A DNA stretch of 64,000 nt. Source: Amoebophrya sp. A120 (taxonomy: Eukaryota; Protista; Dinoflagellata). This document shows, piece by piece, positions 13,453 through 38,130 of this stretch. The translations under genes and the position numbers were made by a program. The stretch's first letter is position 1. Every line of letters starts with the position of its first letter. Location of the stretch: contig CAJINV010000005.1 in the NCBI GenBank assembly GCA_905178155.1, positions 8,533,591-8,597,590 on the forward strand. The letters are read 5' to 3'. The notes beneath the pieces were generated by a model that saw nothing but the letters and a program-made list of their open reading frames with translations, was not told the DNA's origin and did not search any database.

Positions 13453-13664
13453 GTGCACAAGAACTCCTGTATAACGTTTATTTTAGCAATAAAACAACTG
13501 AGTCTAGAGTTCCACTTTCACCACAGGCGACAGAAGAATCAGCTCCTAGCGTCGTCGAGTCAGAAAGCTCTCCACCTCGTCGAATCAGAAAAGGCAGGTA
13601 TAAAAATCCGATGAATAGCGAGAAGATCGTGCGAGATTGTTCCACTATTAATGATTGGTCCGCC

Positions 13665-14087
13665 CCACCCTTGCCACCCAAAGGGGGGTCGTGGAACAAG
13701 ATATAGGGAGGATATTCTCGCTGATAGAGATTTTCATCTTCACTGCTGCTTTTCAACATCCGGGAGCCATTTTATCAAATGCAAACAATTTCTGTATACT
13801 GCTCCTGTAAGGAGGCAGCAGCATCCGCTAGAGTGCAGGATGCGCGATGAACGCGACACAAGGCTCGTGGCCCGTCGCCGACATTGAGAGACCGTTTTAT
13901 GATCAATCAACACGACGCTAGTACTAGTAGCGAAGACGCATTGATGCTGCCATCAGGAACATTGGAATAAGAGCCCGCTGGTGCGCTCTAAGTTAGTCGC
14001 ACCCCCCAGCTGGACGGCCCAGGCACCTCTAGGATCTTGTTCACCTCTTGCGATGTTCGTCCAAATTACGAATACAGAGGGTTGCTT
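13665..14087. repeat. Dispersed ~420-bp repeat, copy 2
   Basis: Direct-orientation copy of 4195-4620. Confidence 0.8.
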
Positions 14088-14759
14088 GACCACCACAACT
14101 CGTTTTAGACAGGGATTTATTTCGTTTTGATGTTTTGACTACTAAAGAACGACCTGGCTGGCTATAATTCTTGTCGTTAGAGACGAGCTTCTTCGATATT
14201 TACAGTTGGACCGCTTCTTGTAGTTCTACTTACGGTAGTTAGACCGCTCGACAACCATAGGATTTTTATGTTTTTTACTCGGGAAGAAAAAACTTTTTGT
14301 TGGCTTGAGCAAGAAGGTTTAGTCACGATCAAGCCGTTTTGCTATCGAGGTGTGCGTAGTTGTTGTCTAAGTGGCAACTTGTAAGATGTTGACTATTTTC
14401 ATCGCTTTGGCCCCCTACAACTGCAAACACTTCTAGGGTGGACGAACAAGAAGTGGACCTTGATGATGATTTGTTTTGTTTGTCAATTGTTTTGTTTATA
14501 TGCCAAGTGTTTTGCGTTTGTTGCCGATCATCGTAAACAGGAAGTGCCCTGATTGTTTTGTTTACCAAACGGAAATAGCACGCGAAGCCCGCGCGTCCCC
14601 ATGCGCATTGATTAACTTGATGAGCCTCGAATTTTTTTCGGACGGTTTAGATGTTGTGGATTGTGTGAGAGTAAGTACAAGAACGCCTAGCTCTACTTGT
14701 ACTATCAAAATCAGCTTATCACACGAGGACCTTCACCAGCACGAGAAAGTTGGATGGAA

Positions 14760-15616
14760 ACCGGCCTAGAATTTTTCCGAAACCGGCCAAGAATTTTTTT
14801 CGTCTTCGAGCCACCTGCGCCCGCTTCCCACCCGTCCTCAGCCGTAAAAACAGTAATTTTTCATTTTTTCCGGGCAATTTGCAAGGTGGAAGGCTGGCCA
14901 TTTTTTCGAAATCGGCCTAAGTTTTTTTTTCGTCTTCACACCCACCTGCGCCCGCTACCCACCCGTCCTCAGCCGTAAAAGCAGTAATTTTTCATTCTTC
15001 CCGGGCAATTTGCAAGGGGGGACGCTGGCCATTTTTCCAAAATTGGCCTAAGTTTTTTTTTCGTTTTAGACCCACCTGCGCCCGCTACCCACCCGCCCTC
15101 AGCCGTAAAAGCAGTAATTTTTCATTTTTTCCGGGCAATTTGCCAGGAGGAAGGCTGGCCATTTTTCCAAAATTGGCCTAAGTTTTTTTTTCGTCTTACC
15201 CATCTGCGCCCGCTACCCACCCGTCCTCAGCCGTAAAAGTAGTAACTTTTCATTTTTTCCGGGCAATTTTCAAGGGGGGACGCTGACTTTTCCAAAATTG
15301 GCCTAAGTTTTTTTTTCTTCTTGCCCACCTGCGCCCGCTACCCACCTGTCCTCAGCCGTAAAAGCAGTAATTTTTCATTTTTTCCGGGAAATTTGCAAGG
15401 CTGGCCATTTTTCCTAAATTGGCCTAAGTTGTTTTTTCGTCTTACCCACCTGCGCCCGCTACCCACCCGTCCTCAGCCGTAAAAACAATATTTTATTTTT
15501 CATTTTTTCCGGGCAATTTGCAGGGGGGAAGGCTGGCCATTTTTTCGAAACTGGCCTAAGTTTTTTTTTCGTCTTACCCACCTGCGCCCGCTACCCACCC
15601 GTCCTCAGCCGTAAAA
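14760..15616. repeat. ~120-132-bp tandem satellite, left part (~7 units), interrupted by the YR retrotransposon
   Basis: Unit core cccacctgcgcccgctacccacccgtcctcagccgtaaaagcagtaatttttcatttttt. Confidence 0.92.
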
Positions 15617-16189
15617 TCGTAAAACTAGATCTCTGTGTTGAAATTTTACTGAGAGAGAGTGATCGACGAGCGCGCTAAGGGCACAGACGTTGATGGCAGT
15701 AGAGTCTTTGACTCACGTTTCGATTTTAGCTGCCCAGTTCACAACGAGGTGGATAGCGACACCTCCCTCTGAGCTGAACAGTCTTCCCAGGTCCAGACCT
15801 GTTGGCGAGTTCTTTTCCTCTACACTCAGTCGTGTTCCAGAGGCAGTCTTTGACCTGGCGGTGATAGTTCTCGCCAGACAGGTCTTTAGTTCTGTTTGGT
15901 TTGAGCGCGCTAAGGAGCGGAGGCGCGAGTTCTCGTGCGACAAAATTCTCACCCGCAGCTTCATTCGTGAAGCTCTTTCCGCTCGGACTAAGGGTCACAG
16001 CGCATTTGCGAGTTTGAGATCGAGAGATCAGTAAAATCGTAAAACTAGATCTCTGTGTTGAAATTTTACTGAGAGAGAGTGATCGACGAGCGCGCTAAGG
16101 GCACAGACGTTGATGGCAGTAGAGTCTTTGACTCACATTTCGATTTTCCCACCCATTCGATCTTTCAGATCCCTCCCTTTTTCAACAAG

Positions 16190-17671
16190 ATGTCTTGGGT
16201 TGACGCTGCTCTCGCTGCCCCGCAGCAGTATGCTCACCAGGCGGGGATGTCAGCAGTCATCCAGTCCCGTCCGAATACGCACAAGATTCTGATGAAACAA
16301 AAGTCCTCATCAGCATCATCTCGGCAACGGAGTGCGTCCGATTTTCAAGCCAGATCGACTCCGTACGATTCCTTCCAACGCCCACGAGCAGCATCATCGG
16401 ATGAAGCATTCGCCGCAGCAGTTGCAGCTTGCAGCGACGCAGAACTACTCAAGGACGACTTCTTCCCACCAGATCCATACAACTCTAGTCCGAAAAAACC
16501 AGCAACATTCCCAGCAGGGTTTTTCACCGAGATGGCGCCTCACCCGAAGATGTTACGACTCTTCCGTGACGCTATGGATCCAGCGAAAACCAAGAAGTCC
16601 TCCCAGAAGTCACAAGCTCTCGCTCTTGCATCAAACTACCCGCGACTCGCAGCAGCGAAAGAGAAGATCACTGCACGTCCTGCGAACCTCACGGAAGACG
16701 CAAGACTGAAGTGCTACTTCCAAATTTGTCATGCAGCTGGACAGCACCCCAAGTCCTCCCACCTTCTCAAGCCGTGGCCCATTACGCGGGACCACGCTCT
16801 GACATTTTTCACCGCGCTTGTCGGCGACACCCCGACAAAGTCGTTTTACACGACGGCGGATGATTATTTATGGTCTGTTATTGCCAGGCTTGAGGCAATT
16901 CCGGGGGGGAGCACCTTGGGGAAGGCGGGCAAGACTTTCATTTCGCAGACGGTCGCACGCCAGAAGCGGGCCGGTATGTTCCAGCATACCCAGCCACCAG
17001 CAGTGCAGTTGGAAGAAGTTCTCGAGCTCGTTAACCTCGAGCACAACAAGAAATACCAATTCGCAGCTGCGTGCGCAATTGGTTTTTTGTTCGGGCTACG
17101 AAAGTCGACTCTGGTCAACAAAATTAGTTTCGGCCTGGAAGACGAATTTCTGCTGCACCACTCCCACTACGACCTCGACGATTCCCCATCCGATGTGGAG
17201 GACGGTGGCTCCATCGAGGAACAGATGCAGACTCACCACATCGCCTCACGACATAACAACACCTACCACAAGTTTTCCGGCGACTTCTCGTATAACGAGG
17301 CGGCCGAGGTCTTTTGTCTAAATTTAGACAAACACGTTTTGAAGTCGAACTTCATACGCAAGGTGTACGTGTGCTGCCTGTGCAGAAATGAAGACTCGTG
17401 TACACTGTGTCCACACAATTTATTGCCTCTGTTGGACGACAACTCCACAGATTGGCGGTCTAATTTCGTGACCGATTTCAAAGCGTTTTTCGGCACTGCC
17501 AGGACGCAGAGTTTGCGCATAGGGTGTCTACAACACCTTATGCGGTGTAAAGTCTCCAGTAGCCGCGTAGGCTGTCACTTACGCTGGCAAACGGCAAGTA
17601 TGATCGAGTACTACAACAGAGGAAACAAGTACGCCTTCAACAAATTTGCTGGTGTTAGTTTCATTCCTTGA
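16190..17671 (+). CDS. Tyrosine recombinase of the YR retrotransposon
   Basis: GFLFGLRKS (catalytic R), TQSLRIG (HxxR box with H replaced by Q), HLRWQTASMIEYY (RW...Y). First ATG at 16190 within ORF 16079-17671. Confidence 0.85.
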   Translation: MSWVDAALAAPQQYAHQAGMSAVIQSRPNTHKILMKQKSSSASSRQRSASDFQARSTPYDSFQRPRAASSDEAFAAAVAACSDAELLKDDFFPPDPYNSSPKKPATFPAGFFTEMAPHPKMLRLFRDAMDPAKTKKSSQKSQALALASNYPRLAAAKEKITARPANLTEDARLKCYFQICHAAGQHPKSSHLLKPWPITRDHALTFFTALVGDTPTKSFYTTADDYLWSVIARLEAIPGGSTLGKAGKTFISQTVARQKRAGMFQHTQPPAVQLEEVLELVNLEHNKKYQFAAACAIGFLFGLRKSTLVNKISFGLEDEFLLHHSHYDLDDSPSDVEDGGSIEEQMQTHHIASRHNNTYHKFSGDFSYNEAAEVFCLNLDKHVLKSNFIRKVYVCCLCRNEDSCTLCPHNLLPLLDDNSTDWRSNFVTDFKAFFGTARTQSLRIGCLQHLMRCKVSSSRVGCHLRWQTASMIEYYNRGNKYAFNKFAGVSFIP

Positions 17672-17785
17672 ACGATCATGGAAAAAGTCTCTTGCTACAT
17701 ATTTCGCTCTCATCTGGCCGCGTGCATAGTTTCACGCCGTGTTCCACCAGAAGTCTTGAGAGAGTCTTCCTGACAAAAAGTCAGA

Positions 17786-20191
17786 GTGCCCGATAGTTTC
17801 GAGCGAGTTTTCAAAGCCGACACTCACATATCAAATTTCTCGAGCGAACCCGGCGAAGTTCAGTCACAAAAGAGGGCAAGCGCCTTCCTTCATGAGAGTT
17901 TTTCTTTTCACGCTGTCATGTGCCAACTTCCACACACTATTAGACAAGCTAATCAAGGATTATTCATCATGATGAACGACGGTGCTTTCGCCGCTCTCGG
18001 CGCGATGGCCGGCCCGGGCGCAGGAGTGCTCGGCGGCAACGTCCCGCTGCCCATCATTCCGCCGGGACACGTGATCCCCGTCGTCCACCCGAAAGTCGGT
18101 GTGGCGAATCCCAAAGTCGGAAAAGCCAACCAGAAAGCGGCCGCCCCGAAGCCGCGCGGCCTGTTCCCGCATGGACCGAAAGCTCCGGCGGCACCGCCAG
18201 TCGCCCCCGTCGTGCACGGGCCGAAAGCCCCGGCTGCAGTCCCAGCTCCCCCAGTTTTCCCGGGTTCAGGTGACCCGGCAGGAGCAGGAGCAGGAGGTGG
18301 ACATGTCTCTCCAAAAGCGAAAGCAGCTGCCCCAGCAGGTGCACCGCCAGCAGGTGGACCGGTGGGTCCAGTCGCCCCGCCAGTCGTCCCGATCGCACCG
18401 ATCGCTCCGCCGGCAGCACCGGTCGCACCAGTCGCTCCAGTAGTGGCACCACCAGCCGCACCCCCGATCGCAGTTGCGCCGGCCCCAGCTCCGGTTGCCC
18501 CAGCGGCACCAGCGGTACCGGCACCAGCGGCACCGGCACCAGTTTTTCCGGCGATCCCCGCGGTCCCAGTGGCACCCGTAGTCGGCCCGCCAGTGGCGCC
18601 ACCAGTCGCCCCAGTCGCACCACCATTTGCACCGATGGCAGCACCAGCTGCTGGTCCAGCTCCGGCCCCGGGTGCGCCGCCATTTTTCGCACCGGGAGGT
18701 GTTGCGGGCGCACCGGCAGCGCCAGCACCCGCAGGTGGAGCGGCAGCTCCGGCCCCGGCAGGTGGCGCGGCAGCACCACCAGCGGCAGTACCAATAGGTG
18801 CACCATTCTTCCCACCGGGCATGCCACAATTTGACCCAGCCTGGTTGCAGATGCACGGTAACCTCTACTTCCAACAGCTGATGAGCCAGAACATGTACAT
18901 GCAGCAGCAGAGCCAGTACATGCAGCACATGATGCAAAATCAGGCTGCCCTGCATCAAGGGTTCGCCGGCTTCGCAGACGCGTACGGCAACGCAAACCCG
19001 GGCAGGGATGATCCGTTCCATCCGGATGCGCCAGTTACCGAAAATGAAACCCGTGCTTTTGCGTGCGCCAACGACGAGATCCCGAAGTCCGACAGGATCG
19101 CGCTGGATTCACACCGGACGATCAACACGTTGACTCGCGACCGCGCGATCCACACCGCCGTGAGCGCCGGGGTGAAATACACGCACCGTAGTCAGGTGCA
19201 AGTAAAGGACACGAAAGCCCTGAAGAACACGTACCCGCCCAAACCAACCACTTTGTTGCGGTGCCTCGCCGTCGGCGGGAAAGTTGACCCCGTCTTCGCC
19301 TCCGCGGAAGAAGCAAACAAAGTAGTTGTGTTCTACGAGGATTTGTGCAAGGCGAAACCAGAACAAGCGAAAGTGGAAGATTGGGAAGCACTAGTGTCGG
19401 ACAAGTTCTACGAAGTGCTCGCTACGTCCTGCGATTCGCTCGCGCCCGACCGCGAGACGCTGCACAACGGCCAGTTAGTGGACACAACTTATCAAGAACG
19501 GATCCGCTACTTCTTCGTCGCACCGGAGTCCGACGTGAACGGCTTCAAATGCAAGCTGAGCACGCTCATCCAGATTACCCACCAGATGGGCGCCACGTTC
19601 AACAACACGAACATGCAGAACATCATGGGCATCAGTACTCCATTCGCCGGCGGCGTCAACACGTCCAACCGCGAACGAACCCCCAGGCGCACAGGGGATT
19701 CTTCTACCACCAACAACCAGCAGTCGGGGGATAAGTTTGTCTTGTGTTGGCACTTTTGTAAGTGTACTCCGTGTTCGAATGACACGTGGTATCGCGATGA
19801 CGGTAGCATCGTTTGCTCTGCGGGATTGCATCCGATGTTGAAGTCCGAGATGTCCAAAGGCCAGTTCAAACGCGTAAAACGCACCCAGATGGGTCGCGTG
19901 GGTCTGAAGGACACCGGCTACTTCTCGTGGGTCGACGATGCTACCGGCGAGTACAAGGGAGACAGTCTGAAAAAGTATTTCCCCGACCGCGGTTCCGCTT
20001 CATCAAAGAAGGGGAAGGGCAAGAAAGGGAAACAGTCTTCTTCTTCTTCCAAGTCCAATGTCCAGCAAGAAGTGTCTTCTTCCAGCAGTGAGGAGGAGGA
20101 AGATGAAAAGGAGAAAAAGAAGAAGAAGTCGAAGTCCATGAAAACTACCCCGGCCACGGGAACAGCCGCTTCCAGCAGTGCTGGGCCGTAG
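17786..20191 (+). CDS. Gag-like ORF of the YR retrotransposon (Pro/Ala-rich, Gln/Met-rich, Cys/His motif, Lys/Ser/Glu tail)
   Basis: 801-aa ORF inside the element; CCCH-like motif CWHFCKCTPC...C...H; the gag assignment is positional; the true start is probably an ATG near 17918-17970. Confidence 0.65.
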   Translation: MPDSFERVFKADTHISNFSSEPGEVQSQKRASAFLHESFSFHAVMCQLPHTIRQANQGLFIMMNDGAFAALGAMAGPGAGVLGGNVPLPIIPPGHVIPVVHPKVGVANPKVGKANQKAAAPKPRGLFPHGPKAPAAPPVAPVVHGPKAPAAVPAPPVFPGSGDPAGAGAGGGHVSPKAKAAAPAGAPPAGGPVGPVAPPVVPIAPIAPPAAPVAPVAPVVAPPAAPPIAVAPAPAPVAPAAPAVPAPAAPAPVFPAIPAVPVAPVVGPPVAPPVAPVAPPFAPMAAPAAGPAPAPGAPPFFAPGGVAGAPAAPAPAGGAAAPAPAGGAAAPPAAVPIGAPFFPPGMPQFDPAWLQMHGNLYFQQLMSQNMYMQQQSQYMQHMMQNQAALHQGFAGFADAYGNANPGRDDPFHPDAPVTENETRAFACANDEIPKSDRIALDSHRTINTLTRDRAIHTAVSAGVKYTHRSQVQVKDTKALKNTYPPKPTTLLRCLAVGGKVDPVFASAEEANKVVVFYEDLCKAKPEQAKVEDWEALVSDKFYEVLATSCDSLAPDRETLHNGQLVDTTYQERIRYFFVAPESDVNGFKCKLSTLIQITHQMGATFNNTNMQNIMGISTPFAGGVNTSNRERTPRRTGDSSTTNNQQSGDKFVLCWHFCKCTPCSNDTWYRDDGSIVCSAGLHPMLKSEMSKGQFKRVKRTQMGRVGLKDTGYFSWVDDATGEYKGDSLKKYFPDRGSASSKKGKGKKGKQSSSSSKSNVQQEVSSSSSEEEEDEKEKKKKKSKSMKTTPATGTAASSSAGP

Positions 20192-20670
20192 TCGTCTCAT
20201 CAATCAGTACACAGTATTTTTTGTCCGCAGGACACAAAAGTTTTTGTCAAATCAAGTATTCATTTATCAATAGATTTCAGTTTGATTTTCCATCTATGGA
20301 TTGTTTGTCAAAAAACGCACCATCAACTACCCACCTGTTTAGAATTTGTTTTTATGCCAAGAATAATCAAAAAATGTCTATCATCCCACTTTCTTCTCTG
20401 GAAGCAGAGTCATACTTCTTCCCTATGCACAGGGTCGTAGTTTCTTCTCCGGCCGCGGAGTCGTATTTTCTTCTCTGCATGCAGAGTCGTATTTCCCTTC
20501 TGGAAACAGAACACTCTCGCTGAAGTTTCAGCCATTCTTGTTGCAAAGCAACATTGCATCGCCCGTACATTGAATAAATTTCCACGTTTTCCATGAAAAA
20601 AAATGAAAAATTAAAAAACATCAACGCCGGAGTTACGCCGATCCGCCGGAGTGTCTCTTCGTCTTCCTGA

Positions 20671-23181
20671 GTGCGACGAGAAAGTTCACGCACAGTCTTT
20701 CAGGAGAGATTCTTCGAGAGACATTTTGCGTCGTTGTTGTTGCTGGTGTCGTCATTCTTTGTCCCACCAGACAGCATGAAGCGTTTTTCGGACTATCTGT
20801 GCCCTGCACGGCACTCACAAGATGACGTGTTTCTCCCCCAGTCCGAGTCTGAGGCTACTCCCCAGGAAGAGGCCGACTACAGGAAGAAGTGGGAGCAGAT
20901 GGTGCAGCGGGTCGAGCAGGATTTACGGAAAAAGTCCCCGTTTGAGCCGATCTCAAACGACTTCCGCTGCGTCGACACAGGGAAGTTATTCTCCACCGAC
21001 GTGATTGCCGAAATCGACAAGATGAACGCTGCGTCGGCTGCCCGCGACATCGCTCGCAAAAAGCAGATGTGCAGCGAAATCCACGCTTTTCACGGCAAGT
21101 ACAACGTCGGTTTTCTGGCTACTGCGATGGAAGCAGCAGGCGCGGAGGACCAAGAGTGCGTTGACGAGGTATTAGTACAGGGCGGCACATGCATAGGTGA
21201 CTGCATGGCGCCCAGTTGTTGGGGACCGCCTTCCTCCAGGAGGAAGCCGTGGTTCGTCACGACAGAACCTCCGTTCAACCTGGACCAGTACAAGACCGGG
21301 ACCCCGCCCCCCGACTGGCCAGAGGCGCACATAAGAGAGATTTTTGCGCAGACCCAGGAGGAAGTCAACGTCGAGCCCCTCCTCGGTCATCCACGGATCC
21401 GCCCCGGTATCACCTACCGACAGGCGAAGAAGGCGAAGTGGAAGCATGTCTGGAGGCGGTTTTGTGTTGAACAAAAAACGAAGATCCGCATGATCGACCC
21501 CGCCTGTGCATGCAACGCCCGCAGTGACCTGTCGAAGGGCGTCCCGATGGGGTCGGCGCAGGAGATCCTGGGGTCGTGTGCAGTCCTGAAGGACCCCAGC
21601 CTCCGCGACCAGAACTTCGTTTCCTTCACCAAGCGGATTGTGAAGAAAGGTCGCTCCCTCGAGAAGGAATACGAGGACGCCTTTGTGCAGTTCATCGAAG
21701 ATGGTACGCCAATCCCTTCGCACCTGAAGAAGCCTTCCAAGGAGTACCATGCAGCCGCTGACGCGAACGTCACTGCCGCCGGGGAACCAGATCCCAAGCG
21801 GCACAAGATGTTTCCGGCCACGTTGCTCCAGCTTCTCATGCTTGTGATAGATGTACATAAAGCTTACAATACGATTGCGGTGCGTCCGTCTCATCGGAAG
21901 TTCAATCGGTTTTGTGTGTACGATTTACAGCAGTCGAAGTACATGTTTTACGAGGCCCTCACCCTTATTTTCGGTAATGTACATTCAGTTGTGTGTTGGG
22001 TTCGTATTTCTATGGCCATAAAAGCTGTCATTGTGTTTTTTGTGCAGATTATGCTCAGCGTTTATGTAGACGACTTCGCCTCTCCTGTGCCCGAGTCTGT
22101 CGGTGAGAAGGCCAAAGAAGCTGTTTTACATGTTTTTCGGACACTTGTGTTTAGTGTGCATCCAAACAAAGTTAAACTTGCACCTATCACAGAGGTTTTA
22201 GGTCTGATTTTCGACCTCGCGGTCGAGGTGCCGGAGTTTTATGTTTCTGTCCAGCGCCAAGAGTCTATCTCCATCATCATCTCCAAGGCTATCGAGGCGT
22301 CGCACCTGGCAGGGGACGTTGCTGAGACATTACACGGAAAAGTAATGCTCTGCTTATCATCCTTGGTCGACAGACGTTACAGCCCGCTCCTCAAGCCCCT
22401 GGCACAGTACGTGCACCACCCCACCCAGCACGGGAAGCCACTGTCTCCCAAGCTGGTCCAGTGTTTGGAGAACGTGCGGACTATTCTCGCGGCTGGCATC
22501 CGCAAGCGAGCACAGTTCGAGGTCCCCACAGCGGACAATGTCATGTTGTACACGGACGCCTCGTACAGTCACGGCTCCGGTTGGCTTTCTGCGATTCTCG
22601 CGATCGGTACATCACTGTTTGCCAGAAGGATCCGGGTCGAGGAAGCGGACCTTCCCGACACCATCCCGAAGTCGCATCCGATTTCCTACCTGGAAGTCGT
22701 GGCGCCGGTGCTCGCGGTGAACGAGTTCAAGTCCAAGTTGCAAGAGAAGTCGCATTTTCGGCTCAGCGTCGACAACGACAGCGCTAAGTGCGCCCTGCTG
22801 AACCAGAACTCCCCTCTGCAGCACATGGCGACGCAGGCGCTGTTCTTCTGGTCGTTGTGCAGTACGTTCTGTCTGTCCCCGTGGGTCGACCGAGTCCCCA
22901 CCGGGTTCAATCCAGCAGATGTTCCGACGCGTTCGCGGTTTTTGTATTTCGTTGTGAACAACTTCCCAGGCGCGTTCCAAGAACTTTCCGCCTTCTCGGA
23001 AGAGACATCGAAGTTGTTGCATCCGGCTCTCCACATGTCAAGTCCAGATCTTTTCGGGGTGTTGCCAGGAGTAACTCTCGACCATTATTTTGACGCTAGT
23101 ACATGGTGCAAAAAGTCAGACAAGTTTTTGAAAGATGATGATGTTTCCATGGTAGATCACGTGTTAGAGTTGTCTCAGTAG
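20671..23181 (+). CDS. Reverse transcriptase-RNase H of DIRS/Ngaro type
   Basis: RT: KIRMID, IDVHKAY, LIFG, YVDDF, EVLGLIFD. RNase H: LYTDAS, ISYLE, VDNDSA, RVPTGFNPADVPTR. Confidence 0.93.
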   Translation: MRRESSRTVFQERFFERHFASLLLLVSSFFVPPDSMKRFSDYLCPARHSQDDVFLPQSESEATPQEEADYRKKWEQMVQRVEQDLRKKSPFEPISNDFRCVDTGKLFSTDVIAEIDKMNAASAARDIARKKQMCSEIHAFHGKYNVGFLATAMEAAGAEDQECVDEVLVQGGTCIGDCMAPSCWGPPSSRRKPWFVTTEPPFNLDQYKTGTPPPDWPEAHIREIFAQTQEEVNVEPLLGHPRIRPGITYRQAKKAKWKHVWRRFCVEQKTKIRMIDPACACNARSDLSKGVPMGSAQEILGSCAVLKDPSLRDQNFVSFTKRIVKKGRSLEKEYEDAFVQFIEDGTPIPSHLKKPSKEYHAAADANVTAAGEPDPKRHKMFPATLLQLLMLVIDVHKAYNTIAVRPSHRKFNRFCVYDLQQSKYMFYEALTLIFGNVHSVVCWVRISMAIKAVIVFFVQIMLSVYVDDFASPVPESVGEKAKEAVLHVFRTLVFSVHPNKVKLAPITEVLGLIFDLAVEVPEFYVSVQRQESISIIISKAIEASHLAGDVAETLHGKVMLCLSSLVDRRYSPLLKPLAQYVHHPTQHGKPLSPKLVQCLENVRTILAAGIRKRAQFEVPTADNVMLYTDASYSHGSGWLSAILAIGTSLFARRIRVEEADLPDTIPKSHPISYLEVVAPVLAVNEFKSKLQEKSHFRLSVDNDSAKCALLNQNSPLQHMATQALFFWSLCSTFCLSPWVDRVPTGFNPADVPTRSRFLYFVVNNFPGAFQELSAFSEETSKLLHPALHMSSPDLFGVLPGVTLDHYFDASTWCKKSDKFLKDDDVSMVDHVLELSQ

Positions 23182-23483
23182 TTTCATACATTCTTTTTTC
23201 GCTCGATTATTCTGCCGCACGGCTGAGTGCCACATTCTTGTGCGTTGCGCTGTTCGACCTAGGCTATCGGTTCGCTCCGCGATACCATACATAGCCTTTG
23301 GATACATTCGGGTCTCCTGTGTATCGGTTGATGAGTTCTCGTCTTCCGAGCGCGCTTTATGCCCAGGAGCTGTCGGCACGAGTTCTCGTGCGACAAAATT
23401 CTCACCCGCAGCTTCATTCGTGAAGCTCTTTCCGCTCGGACTAAGGGTCACAGCGCATTTGCGAGTTTGAGATCGAGAGATCA

Positions 23484-23790
23484 GTAAAAGCAGTAATTTT
23501 TCATTTTTTCCGGGAAATTTGCAAGGGGGAAGGCTAGCCATTTTTCCAAAATTGGCCTAAGTTTTTTTTTCGTCTTACCCATCTGCGCCCGCTACCCACC
23601 CGTCCTCAGCCGTAAAAACAGTAATTTTTCATTTTTTCCGGGCAATTTGCAAGGGGAACGCTGGCCATTTTCCCAAAATTGGCCTAAGTTTTCTTTTCGT
23701 CTTGCCCACCTGCGCCCGCTACCCACCCGTCCTCAGCCGTAAAAACAGCAAGTTTTAATTTTTTCCGAGCAATTCGCTGGCAATTTTTCC
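23484..23790. repeat. ~127-bp tandem satellite, right part (~2.5 units)
   Basis: Continues the 14760-15616 array: gtaaaa|gcagtaatttttcatttttt. Confidence 0.9.
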
Positions 23791-24540
23791 GAAATCGGTT
23801 CTAATCGAGAACATCAGGAAAAAATAAAGAGCAGTGAAGATGACGAAGGCAAGCGCAAACCCAAGTTTGAAGCAGGAGCAGCTTGTTTTGACTGAGTCAC
23901 GACCTTTGCTAGACAAGTGTCGGATGAACAACTACGAAGAAGATCATTAAGTGCGTGTGCCTGTGATCCAAAATGGATTCGGTTTACCGATCATTGGTCT
24001 CTATAAATCTTCATCCAAATAAATCACAAGACGATCTGGATCTGAGGTGGATCTTGAAAATAAAAGTGATTTCAATTTCACGGTGCAACCGAATTGGAAG
24101 TTGGTACACATCAAGAAGATCACGTCTGAGTAAAATATCCTGATCCTCATCGAGAGTTCATGGGAAGTTAGTACAAAATATCACCAAATTGATTCCATCT
24201 GGCAACCCGAGCACGTCTTGGTCCTGTTGTAATGGATTGCAATCGACGTCGGACTCGGAGCAGCTACGTGTAAAACAAAAACGACACAGTGACAGTCTTA
24301 TTGTGACGGTACAGCAGGTAGCTACTTTTGACACGGTATTTTGATAGAATTACTTTCAAACTTAAACTTTCTTTTTCCCATGGATGCGAGCGCAATTATG
24401 ATTTAAGCCCAAAACTTGACAAATTTTCATTTTGAAAAGCGCTTGAACATTTATATTTATTTCAGGAACGAGCAGAAACAAAGCGGAGCAGCTACTTGTA
24501 GATACTTCTTCCCGAAAAGTGGATTTGCTCAACACAAACA

Positions 24541-35759: not shown

Positions 35760-36255
35760 CGCCCTGTGCCCGCCGGTCCTCACCCGTAGAGATAGTGATT
35801 TTTGATTTTTTCCGGACAAGTGACTCCGTGGAACGCTGGTCATTTTTCAGAAATTCTTTTTTCGTCTCCGCCGCCTGCGCCCGCTACCCGCCGGTCCTCA
35901 CCCGCGGAGACAGTGATTTTTGATTTTTCCCGGGCAATCTGTAATGTGCCACGCTGGCCATTTTTTCAAAACTAGCACATTTTCTTTTTTCGTCTCCGTC
36001 GCCTGCGCCCGTTACCCGCTGATCCTCACCGGTGGGAGCAGTGATTTGTGATTTTTCCTGGGCAATCTGTAGCTGGCCATTTTTTTAAAATTAGCACATT
36101 TTCTTTTTTCGCCTCCGTCGCCTGCGCCCGCTACCCACCGGTCCTCACCCGTGGGAGCAGTGATTTTTGATTTTTTCCGGAAAATTTCTACGGTGGACCG
36201 CTGGCCAATTTTCTAAAAACACCCCAATTTTTTTTTTCGTCTCCGCGCCTGCGCC
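35760..36255. repeat. ~127-bp satellite array (~4 units), related to the 14.8-kb satellite
   Basis: Unit core cgtctccg..gcctgcgcccgctacccgccggtcctcacccgtgggagcagtgatttttgattttt; abuts a truncated family A introner (~35600-35758). Confidence 0.85.
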
Positions 36256-36699
36256 ATCTAGAGCCCAAGTAAGTAGCGCAAGTCGGTCTTCCTGTTGTGC
36301 CTAAGTATCCCCTTCAAAAAAAATGGTCGAGTTTCATTGGAACAGCTGAGCTTTGGCGCAATGACTTCTGTGAATTCTGTGGGCGCGACCTTATCCGCGA
36401 CTATAGAACAGAATTTAGGTACAGTAGTACTAGTCTTGATTCTTCAGCAGCTAGTATTAGGATTGATTCTTATTTATCTTTTGACAGTGCAAGAAAGATG
36501 AGTCGAAGATTTCCCCACAGAAGATTTTCCCTATTGAAGATGAAGACTTCCGCCCCACATCATCACCGGGAAATGTTAATGTGGCACGCTGGTGCCAGGT
36601 TTTGGTTTACTATGTACCTTTCGACATTGATCTGCGCGGGTGAATAAAAGAGACTGCCCTCTGGTACTTTCCTGGTGCAGCTACGAAACGTCTTCATAA

Positions 36700-38130
36700 A
36701 GATTAGCACGTTTTTGTTTTTCGTCTCCTCGCCTGCGCCCTGTCCCCGTCGGTCCTCACCCGTGGGAGCAGTCATTTTTGATTTTTCCCGGGCAATCTGT
36801 AATGCGCCACGCTGGCCATTTTTGAAAAATTAGCACATTTTCTTTTTTCGTCTCCTCGCCTGCGCCCTGTCCCCGCCGGTCCTCACCCGTGGGAACAGTC
36901 ATTTTTGATTTTTCCCGGGCAATCTGTAATGCGCCACGCTGGTCATTTTTGGAAAATTGGCGCGTTTTTGTTTTTCGTCTCCTCGCCTGCGCCCTGTCCC
37001 CGTCGGTCCCCACCCGTTGGAGCAGTCATTTTTGATTTTCCCCGGGCAATCTGTAATGCGCCACGCTGGCCATTTTTGAAAAAATAGCACGTTTTTGTTT
37101 TTCGTCTCCTCGCCTGCGCCCTGTCCCCGCCGGTCCTCACCCGTGGGAGCAGTCATTTTTGATTTTTCCCGGGCAATCTGTAATGCGCCACGCTGGCCAT
37201 TTTTGAAAATTGATTAGCGCATTTTCTTTTTTCGTCTCCTCGCCTGCGCCCTGTTCCCGCCGGTCCTCACCCGTGGGAGCAGTCATTTTTGATTTTTCCC
37301 GGGCAATCTGTAATGCGCCACGCTGGTCATTTTTGAAAAATTAGCATGTTTTTTGTTTTTCGTCTCCTCGCCTGCGCCCTGTCCCCGCCGGTCCTCACCC
37401 GTGGGAACAGCCATTTTTGATTTTCCCCGGGCAATCTGTAATGCGCCACGCTGGTCATTTTTGAAAAATTGGCACGTTTTTGCTTTTCGTCTCCTCGCCT
37501 GCGCCCTGTCCCCGCCGGTCCTCACCCGTGGGAGCAGTCATTTTTGATTTTCCCCGGGCAATCTGTAATGCGCCACGCTGGCCATTTTTGAAAAATTAGC
37601 ATGTTTTTCGTCTCCTCGCCTGCGCCCTGTCCCCGCCGGTCCTCACCCGTGGGAACAGTAATTTTTGATTTTTCCCGGGCAATCTGTACTGCGCCACGCT
37701 GGCCATTTTTGAAAAATTAGCACATTTTCTTTTTTCGTCTCCGCCGTCTGCGCCCTGTCCCCGCCGGTCCTCACCCGTGGGAGCAGTGACTTTTGATTTT
37801 TCCCGGGCAATCTGTAATGCGCCACGATGGCCATTTTTCCAATTAATTTCTTTTTTCGTCTCCGTCGCCTGCACCCTGTGCCCGCCGGTCCTCACCCGCG
37901 GGAGCAGTGATTTGGATTTTTCTCGGGCAACCTGTGATGCGTTACGCTGGCCATTTTTTCAAAACTAGCACATTTTCTTTTTTCGTCTCCGCCGTCTGCG
38001 CCCTGTCCCCGCCGGTCCTCACCCGTGGAGGCAGTGAATTTTGATTTTTCCCGGTCAATCTGCAATGCGCCCCGCTGGCCATTTTTTCAAAATTAGCACG
38101 TTTTCTTTTTTCGTCTCCGCCGTCTTGCGC
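36700..38130. repeat. ~127-bp satellite array (~11 units)
   Basis: Unit cgtctcctcgcctgcgccctgtccccgccggtcctcacccgtgggagcagtcatttttgatttttcccgggcaatctgtaatgcgccacgctgg. Confidence 0.92.

Follow-up and report, generated by a model that had tools for sequence, protein, structure and literature searches.

A tyrosine-recombinase retrotransposon of the DIRS order in Amoebophrya sp. A120 and the short overlap at its insertion junctions

Results

Anatomy of the element and of the repeat around it

In this work we have examined a stretch of 64,000 nucleotides from the dinoflagellate Amoebophrya sp. A120 (assembly GCA_905178155.1, contig CAJINV010000005.1, positions 8,533,591 to 8,597,590 of the forward strand), which as a whole is called the window below. 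Inside a small tandem repeat the window carries one intact tyrosine-recombinase (YR) retrotransposon of about 7.9 kb (15611-23489), whose features are collected in Table 1. A repeat search found no pair of long terminal repeats (LTRs) and, within 13500-24500, no inverted repeat reaching 30 nt; what it did find was a set of split direct repeats in the order A1-x-B1-A2-[YR, ORF2, RT/RNase H]-B2, with three long open reading frames (ORFs), among them that for the probable reverse transcriptase (RT), all lying between A2 and B2. The stretch shared by B1 and A2 is exactly GTAAAA, six bases with which A1 also opens and B2 closes. The chance probability of a 6-bp overlap at such a junction is about 0.001, and the B1/A2 junction was also recovered in an independent assembly of public reads.

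The same bases occur in the repeat itself. A unit of the array reads ctcagcc-GTAAAA-gcagtaattt (for example at 14970-14992), the internal junction at 16031 reads gagatca-GTAAAA-tcgtaaaac, the left end at 15611 reads ctcagcc-GTAAAA-tcgtaaaac and the right end at 23484 reads gagatca-GTAAAA-gcagtaattt. A preliminary description of this DNA had given these four strings and had taken them for the products of a conservative recombination; on re-reading, strings and coordinates were correct to the base. It had also claimed that the satellite continues in register past the element, and this holds too: the start-to-start spacing of the ~128-bp repeat over the element is 8001, which is 7873 + 128, and the array therefore resumes in register. 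With the adjacent repeat units used as a stand-in for the empty site, a single unit is interrupted and target bases are neither lost nor gained, save for one GTAAAA at each end. A pattern scan for the unit gave 21 matches, where 0.04 would be expected by chance. GTAAAA was present in all eight uninterrupted units of the occupied array and in none of the 13 units that make up its sister arrays (36.0-38.0 kb); GTGGGA stands at this place in 11 of these, and one- or two-base variants of it in the other two (GTTGGA, GCGGGA/GTGGAG). These sister arrays are unoccupied, as had been described.

Table 1. Features of the element and of the associated repeats (window coordinates)
Feature	Position	Strand	Basis
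Target array, left part, ~128-bp repeat, units ..CCTCAGCC-GTAAAA-(G/A)CAGT..	14771..15610	+	TRF, pattern scan
GTAAAA overlap, left junction (attL-like)	15611..15616	+	sequence reading, junction comparison
A1, terminal copy of repeat A	15611..15727	+	repeat search, 99% identical to A2
Unique spacer x, between A1 and B1	15728..15921	+	repeat search
B1, internal copy of repeat B, with conserved AAGGGTCAC motif	15922..16036	+	repeat search, 99% identical to B2; alignment
GTAAAA at internal B1/A2 junction, proxy and presumed template of the circle junction	16031..16036	+	sequence, junction comparison
A2, internal copy of repeat A, with conserved AAGGGCACAGAC motif	16031..16147	+	repeat search, alignment
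Covarying dyad, left arm TCAGTAAAAT 16028-16037, right arm ATTTTACTGA 16063-16072	16028..16072	+	alignment, covariation
ORF1, tyrosine recombinase, first ATG 16190, frame open from 16079	16190..17671	+	profile, structure model
ORF2, 801 amino acids, presumed gag-like	17786..20191	+	composition, no Pfam match
ORF3, probable reverse transcriptase (YVDD) with RNase H-like DAS motif	20671..23181	+	weak RVT_1; homologues with PF00078
B2, terminal copy of repeat B	23375..23489	+	repeat search, 99% identical to B1
GTAAAA overlap, right junction (attR-like)	23484..23489	+	sequence reading, junction comparison
Tandem repeat, right part, in register with the left	23490..23774	+	repeat search, TRF
Related arrays, GTGGGA in 11 of 13 units, no GTAAAA, unoccupied	35953..38118	+	TRF, pattern scan

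Sister elements and the overlap at their junctions

Protein searches of the genome revealed diverged relatives of the element with 47-63% identity on contigs C11, C8, C4, C1 and C5, which we name after their contigs (that on C5 is called C5b), and one further relative on C11 which is a degenerate copy. The layout of A1, a spacer, B1 abutting A2 and then the YR gene is common to C11, C8, C4, C1, C5b and a truncated element, C5c; all have a spacer similar in size to x, with A1-to-A2 spacings of 420-603 bp, and B2 lies downstream of the RT gene wherever the right end can be read. The junctions of the window element and of the four sisters with both ends (C11, C8, C4 and C1) were compared base by base, whereas only one end was readable in C5b (the left one) and in F5 and C4c (the right one). 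In each of the five complete elements one overlap is common to the left, internal and right junctions: GTAAAA (6 bp) in the window, AAT (3 bp) in C11, AAAA (4 bp) in C8, AAATCAC (7 bp) in C4 and AAA (3 bp) in C1. The two ends and the B1/A2 junction of the window element thus stand to one another as attL, attR and a proxy of attP in a conservative recombination, as had been proposed, and the same is true of the four sisters.

Without a requirement for homology the expected overlap is about 0.7 bp, and the joint probability of five overlaps at least this long is about 2e-11. Junction and target do share a short overlap, and they do so throughout this lineage. In an alignment of six junctions every overlap falls on the A-run of one conserved motif, approximately GAGAGAT-TGT-AAAA-T, and the intersection of the overlaps is two A's. 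Once 3 bp are given, the extra matches amount to 3, 0, 1, 4 and 0, for which the probability by chance is about 0.04-0.10. What every insertion has needed is about 3 bp (AAA or AAT) and not 6; a preference for longer homology, of which the 6 bp of the window and the 7 bp of C4 might be signs, is possible but not established, and these lengths may reflect either chance or a mild preference. The elements with one readable end agree with this position of the crossover. In the half-sites of C5b and C5c the identity with A begins within the A-run, the right end of C4c, from a distant family (~30% identity), is ATAAAA, and in F5, a five-copy family with the Ngaro layout, four independent right ends are all CGAAA and then pass into unrelated flanks. 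In total, ten independent right junctions stop at the A-run or just past it.

Two further observations concern the relatives. C5c (L042+L059; G000:C5:1570997-1574984, minus strand) is a second copy of the C4 family; it retains A1-x-B1-A2 along with the beginning of the YR gene and a fragment of RT, but B2 is missing. On its two flanks 49 bp of the target are directly duplicated (GATGGTGG...GGCGGAAAAA), and its left junction lies on the A-run as in the other elements; the right side resembles the outcome of an aberrant or repaired integration and not a YR product. A Ngaro-like 3' family, whose RT is 28% identical to ORF3, is present in at least four copies that are 99.9% identical (L044-L047; G000:C1:7291k, C1:11518k, C4:230k and C5:3595k). 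The order at its 3' end is B1, an A2 of about 246 bp and then a 125-bp B2; two of its copies stop right at B, as though recombination between B1 and B2 had removed A2-B2 as a loop, and about 40 related B-like segments occur genome-wide.

Dyads and conserved motifs at the junction

The preliminary description had pointed to two dyads next to the internal junction, AGAGATC/GATCTCT (16023-16029/16048-16054) and TCAGTAAAAT/ATTTTACTGA, and had likened them to the binding arms of a recombinase. Both dyads exist, and in the alignment they differ in conservation. AGAGATC/GATCTCT was found only in the window element and is absent from all relatives; for that reason we do not count it as a general feature, and it is probably accidental or peculiar to the window family. 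TCAGTAAAAT/ATTTTACTGA keeps its position in six of six aligned elements, although the sequences differ (as in GATTGTAAAAT/ATTTTACAATC, CAGAAAAAT/ATTTTTCTG and GAAGAAAAA/TTTTTCTTC): 94% of cells are paired, compared with 40-56% in controls with a slid partner, and compensatory changes occur in three pairs. The same geometry can be seen by eye in C4c (ATGAATAAA/TTTATTCAT) and, more weakly, in F5. The left arm spans the end of B and the overlap, and the right arm lies ~24-27 nt further into A. The arms are 9-11 nt long, and the crossover falls on the inner border of the left one. Of the two dyads proposed, then, one is conserved and covaries and the other is not conserved; the geometry of the former is not that of a classical recombinase site. 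Folded as free DNA, the hairpins reach only -5 to -6 kcal/mol (z between 0 and -2.4), and with such weak folding energies we reject a stable free hairpin as a sufficient explanation. Covariation cannot separate a base-paired structure from two half-sites co-evolving with a protein. A DNA-pattern scan of metagenomes for the dyad gave five loci, all of them without YR or RT, and these were set aside as chance palindromes.

On both sides of the junction all six aligned elements also carry the motif AAGGG(T)CAC(AGAC), despite the divergence of the non-coding sequence around it. AAGGGTCAC lies ~45 nt to the left of the overlap and AAGGGCACAGAC ~85 nt to its right, and to judge from the alignment they are candidates for accessory binding sites or for a transcription signal.

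Proteins of the element

The open frame of ORF1 comprises 530 codons. Its product had no match among Pfam families or PDB sequences, either alone or when combined with the seven relatives closest to it. When 1.8 billion representative sequences were searched with a profile, 60 relatives were obtained, 47 of which give the consensus FGLR...LKSN...THSxRIG...HLRW...YY; five distant members of the family match PF00589 (Phage_integrase), though the window protein itself does not. In the family profile H, R, W and Y align with H289, R292, W315 and Y324 of Cre and FGLR with R173, in exact register and at a marginal E of 0.18. An AlphaFold model built on the family alignment (pLDDT 80, pTM 0.69) had as its top Foldseek matches only Cre/Tre, lambda Int, IntI, XerH, XerA and Tn1549 Int, with probabilities of 0.9-1.0 over ~350-400 columns, and ORF1 carries R, K, QxxR, W and Y in a motif of the form R..(Q/H)xxR..W..Y. 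The relatives with PF00589, the Cre register and the structural matches identify ORF1 as a tyrosine recombinase, by fold as well as by motif, in agreement with the YR of the preliminary description.

ORF3 matches RVT_1 with an E of 3e-5 and 24.2 bits, which is below the curated cut-off of 29.6 bits, and has no match among PDB sequences; its YVDD box and DAS motif are readable, and close homologues carry PF00078. ORF2, with a middle part rich in Pro and Ala, a Cys-rich C-terminal part and no Pfam match, is presumed to be gag-like. Within it, at 18000-19000, about 1 kb has 68% G+C and encodes Pro/Ala/Val-rich low complexity with short tandem repeats, and long antisense ORFs there are a by-product of this composition. 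A Pfam search of all ORFs found no DDE integrase (rve), no endonuclease domain and no family other than the weak RVT_1; there was no methyltransferase match either, although a very divergent one could escape detection. The nearest database proteins come from Amoebophrya sp. A120 and A25, and protein-pattern scans of viral and of metagenome contigs, made for relatives outside this genome, gave no match.

Copies of the family and the repeat as a target

When the genome assembly of 115.5 Mb was probed with the junction sequence, the only matches were this locus and the end of contig C222, which makes the window family single-copy. C222 (L004; G000:C222:754-2348) has an identical left junction, flank and satellite units and ends 95 nt into A1. 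Because it has the same left flank and junction we rejected it as an independent insertion and regard it as the same locus recorded twice. C222 and C94 (G000:C94, L007), which holds the YR region of C5b, are identical or near-identical short contigs ending inside element repeats, and they look like haplotigs or assembly leftovers.

Genome-wide, the GTAAAA type of repeat is confined to this array (eight whole units and the interrupted one), its duplicate on C222 and two to three units on C15 (G000:C15:1857559-1857834). The last are the only other GTAAAA-type units in the genome; they have CCTCACCC in place of CCTCAGCC and are unoccupied. The wider repeat family is found in a few places only, mostly near the window. 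The insertions C11, C8, C4 and C1 lie in unique or otherwise unrelated sequence with no TRF array at their junctions, the four right flanks of F5 are mutually unrelated and non-satellite, and wherever the flank of a sister insertion can be read it is not a satellite. The C4 family, with two copies, occupies two unrelated sites (gagcccataac/atttgtc and ggcgga/caaaaac). Between the satellite unit and the junction no similarity was found past the six bases.

Discussion

We consider it probable that an intact YR retrotransposon of the DIRS order recombined its B-A junction with a target sharing about 3 bp, and that its landing in the satellite was incidental. Five elements with the same base-exact relation between three junctions, a common position of the crossover, the anatomy and the recombinase carry this reading. 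According to the model published for DIRS, PAT and Ngaro elements, the RNA of the element would lack the extreme ends, and the internal B1/A2 junction would serve as the template from which the B-A circle junction is restored in the cDNA. The substrate, we infer, would be a circular DNA with this junction. The element's own recombinase would then exchange strands between the B-A junction and a target with the same few bases, with the crossover presumably on the A-run of the conserved motif (..GAGAGAT-TGT-AAAA-T..), so that the left end would read target-overlap-A and the right end B-overlap-target, with no target-site duplication (TSD). The rule described for DIRS1-like elements is of the same kind: a 3-bp circular junction recombines with an identical genomic triplet and no TSD arises, the triplets being AAT, AAA or AAC, most often the complement of ATT, GTT or TTT (Piednoel et al. 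2011, PMC3266345). The same idea of a circle junction is summarised by Malicki et al. (2020, PMC7192593), citing Poulter and Goodwin, and in DIRS-1 an internal complementary region (ICR) is experimentally essential (PMC7192593).

Several points weigh against this reading. Most DIRS-1 cDNA in Dictyostelium is linear and single-stranded (PMC7192593), and even the type element thus offers no established case of a double-stranded circle. In our data no circle was seen: the read depth at the B-A junction, 69.6, compares with 44 for single-copy and 98 for two-copy sequence, and extra circles are not needed to explain it. Nor was a transcript seen; three RNA runs with the same species label gave no reads over 15001-21000, which carries no weight as to expression or RNA ends. 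The window YR has Gln at the position of His289 of Cre (RTQSLRIG, window 17400-17520), and for this reason its full catalytic competence, as judged from the sequence, is unproven. Gln stands at this position also in most close paralogues and His in the more distant L012 and P0003 and in the wider family consensus, and the ORFs of the recombinases bearing either residue are all intact. Lastly, no empty allele was found in the assembly, where the right flank is present once, and with one insertion only the window family's own target preference is not measurable.

The recombinase, the logic of the junctions and the overlap rule place the element in the DIRS order. It has a YR instead of a DDE integrase or an endonuclease, an internal copy of its joined termini, which six relatives also have, and an insertion without TSD through an overlap common to junction and target (6, 3, 4, 7 and 3 bp). 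Its likeness to the individual groups of the order is partial. With DIRS1-like elements it shares a YR, a probable RT/RNase H, internal joined termini, a short A-rich overlap and the lack of a TSD; theirs, however, are inverted terminal repeats, an ICR near the 3' end and a methyltransferase, while here the repeats are direct, the junction is at the 5' side and no methyltransferase was matched. In PAT elements gag usually comes first, and here the order is YR, ORF2 and RT/RNase H. The split direct repeats A1-B1-A2-B2 are those of PAT-like elements (Szitenberg et al. 2014, PMC4157794), but a methyltransferase defines the group to which PAT belongs (PMC4157794), and none was detected here. Elements of the Ngaro/VIPER type have split direct repeats, a YR with RT/RNase H and no methyltransferase (PMC8547959, PMC6681497), and our element, with a probable RT/RNase H, resembles them in this, but in their layout, A1-[ORFs]-B1A2B2, the junction is downstream of the ORFs, whereas B1A2 (15922-16147) lies here upstream of all three. 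F5, in the same genome, has the Ngaro layout and also ends in an A-run. The term DIRS is absent from the text of the A120 assembly paper, which mentions LTR and non-LTR retroelements (PMC7789003).

Outside the order the closest comparison is with Cryptons, whose 4-6-bp terminal direct repeats have likewise been read as an overlap of circle and target (Kojima & Jurka 2011, PMC3212892); these are YR DNA transposons without a reverse transcriptase and without an internal copy of the junction. The classical YR sites (loxP, the attP/attB core, dif) share with our system the enzyme fold, the catalytic motif and the identity of the partners in the exchanged region. They consist, however, of 11-13-bp inverted arms around a 6-8-bp spacer (PMC3212892), while here the conserved arms are ~24-27 nt apart and the overlap, which goes down to 3 bp, falls within the left arm or on its border. 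From an LTR retrotransposon the element differs in having no LTR pair, no rve match and a flanking repeat that equals its internal junction and ranges over 3-7 bp among relatives.

Could the cDNA be recombined not as a double-stranded circle but as a folded single strand? In that case the dyad would form a hairpin, stabilised by protein and read by the YR, which would need about 3 nt of identity in the target; one strand might be exchanged at the A-run and replication would complete the process, by analogy with integron attC or the attP of CTX phage. The compensatory changes of the dyad in six elements, together with its visibility by eye in two distant families, would suit such a structure, as would the crossover on the inner border of the left arm with the second arm ~24-27 nt away, a geometry that misfits a site made of arm, 6-8-bp spacer and arm. 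The single-stranded intermediates of DIRS-1 (PMC7192593) would suit it too. Against this stand the weakness of the hairpins when taken alone and the fact that covariation of inverted arms is equally expected for protein-binding half-sites. On balance we think this route unlikely.

The preliminary description had gone further than a short overlap, proposing a 6-bp GTAAAA core and a recombinase possibly specific for this satellite; taken in full, the claim would amount to an attP x attB system in which the satellite serves as the dedicated attB. Satellite-directed integration is an attractive idea, and some observations seem to speak for it: the 6-bp overlap of the window is itself improbable by chance, every unit of the occupied array has GTAAAA while the sister arrays without it mostly have GTGGGA, and a GTAAAA array is so rare in the genome that a random hit is a priori unlikely. 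However, the overlaps of the sisters are 3, 4, 7 and 3 bp long and differ in sequence, their common part is two or three A's, and the evidence for homology beyond 3 bp is marginal. No readable sister or F5 flank is in a satellite, the C4 family has used two unrelated sites, the GTAAAA units on C15 are empty, and the similarity of target and junction ends with the six bases. A dedicated satellite attB would further lead one to look for repeated use of one target by independent insertions, and there is none here. Since the family is single-copy, C222 being a duplicate record, the unoccupied GTGGGA arrays are uninformative, and with one insertion and about 12 candidate units enrichment is not computable. 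About a tenth of the window is tandem repeat according to TRF, so that to find one of five or more insertions in a repeat is no surprise and is what chance would give. We regard a 6-bp core with satellite targeting as quite improbable. Target choice does not appear to be sequence-specific apart from the overlap, and the landing in the satellite is most simply incidental; satellite specificity is rejected as unsupported, though for the window family it is not strictly refuted. The earlier interpretation is thus partly supported: it was right in kind, as it amounts to the established DIRS model, but it asked too much of the 6-bp core, and of its two dyads one holds. Its idea of satellite targeting was wrong or at least without support. 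Least probable of all, and by our estimate hardly credible, is that GTAAAA is an ordinary TSD of a staggered cut and its match to the internal junction a coincidence or a relic, for although the flanks formally resemble a 6-bp TSD, the same bases join B1 to A2 in the window element and in all four sisters, the supposed TSD would range from 3 to 7 bp within one lineage, and the element encodes a YR, with no integrase or endonuclease domain found in any ORF.

Integration of YR retrotransposons has been inferred almost wholly from sequence anatomy, with experiments only on DIRS-1 and with the form of the intermediate left open. The model of integration that we favour is already published for this class, and our results do not add a new mechanism to it but a new instance from a new lineage. 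They provide clean, independent data on layouts with direct repeats in a distant eukaryote, the syndinian dinoflagellate parasite Amoebophrya: five complete insertions and several half-sites in which the crossover falls on one conserved A-run with overlaps of 3-7 bp. The comparison has also exposed candidate cis-sites, namely the covarying dyad and the two conserved AAGGG(T)CAC motifs. A defined substrate, composed of junction, dyad and overlap, and a defined enzyme, the recombinase of ORF1, are thereby at hand for biochemistry.

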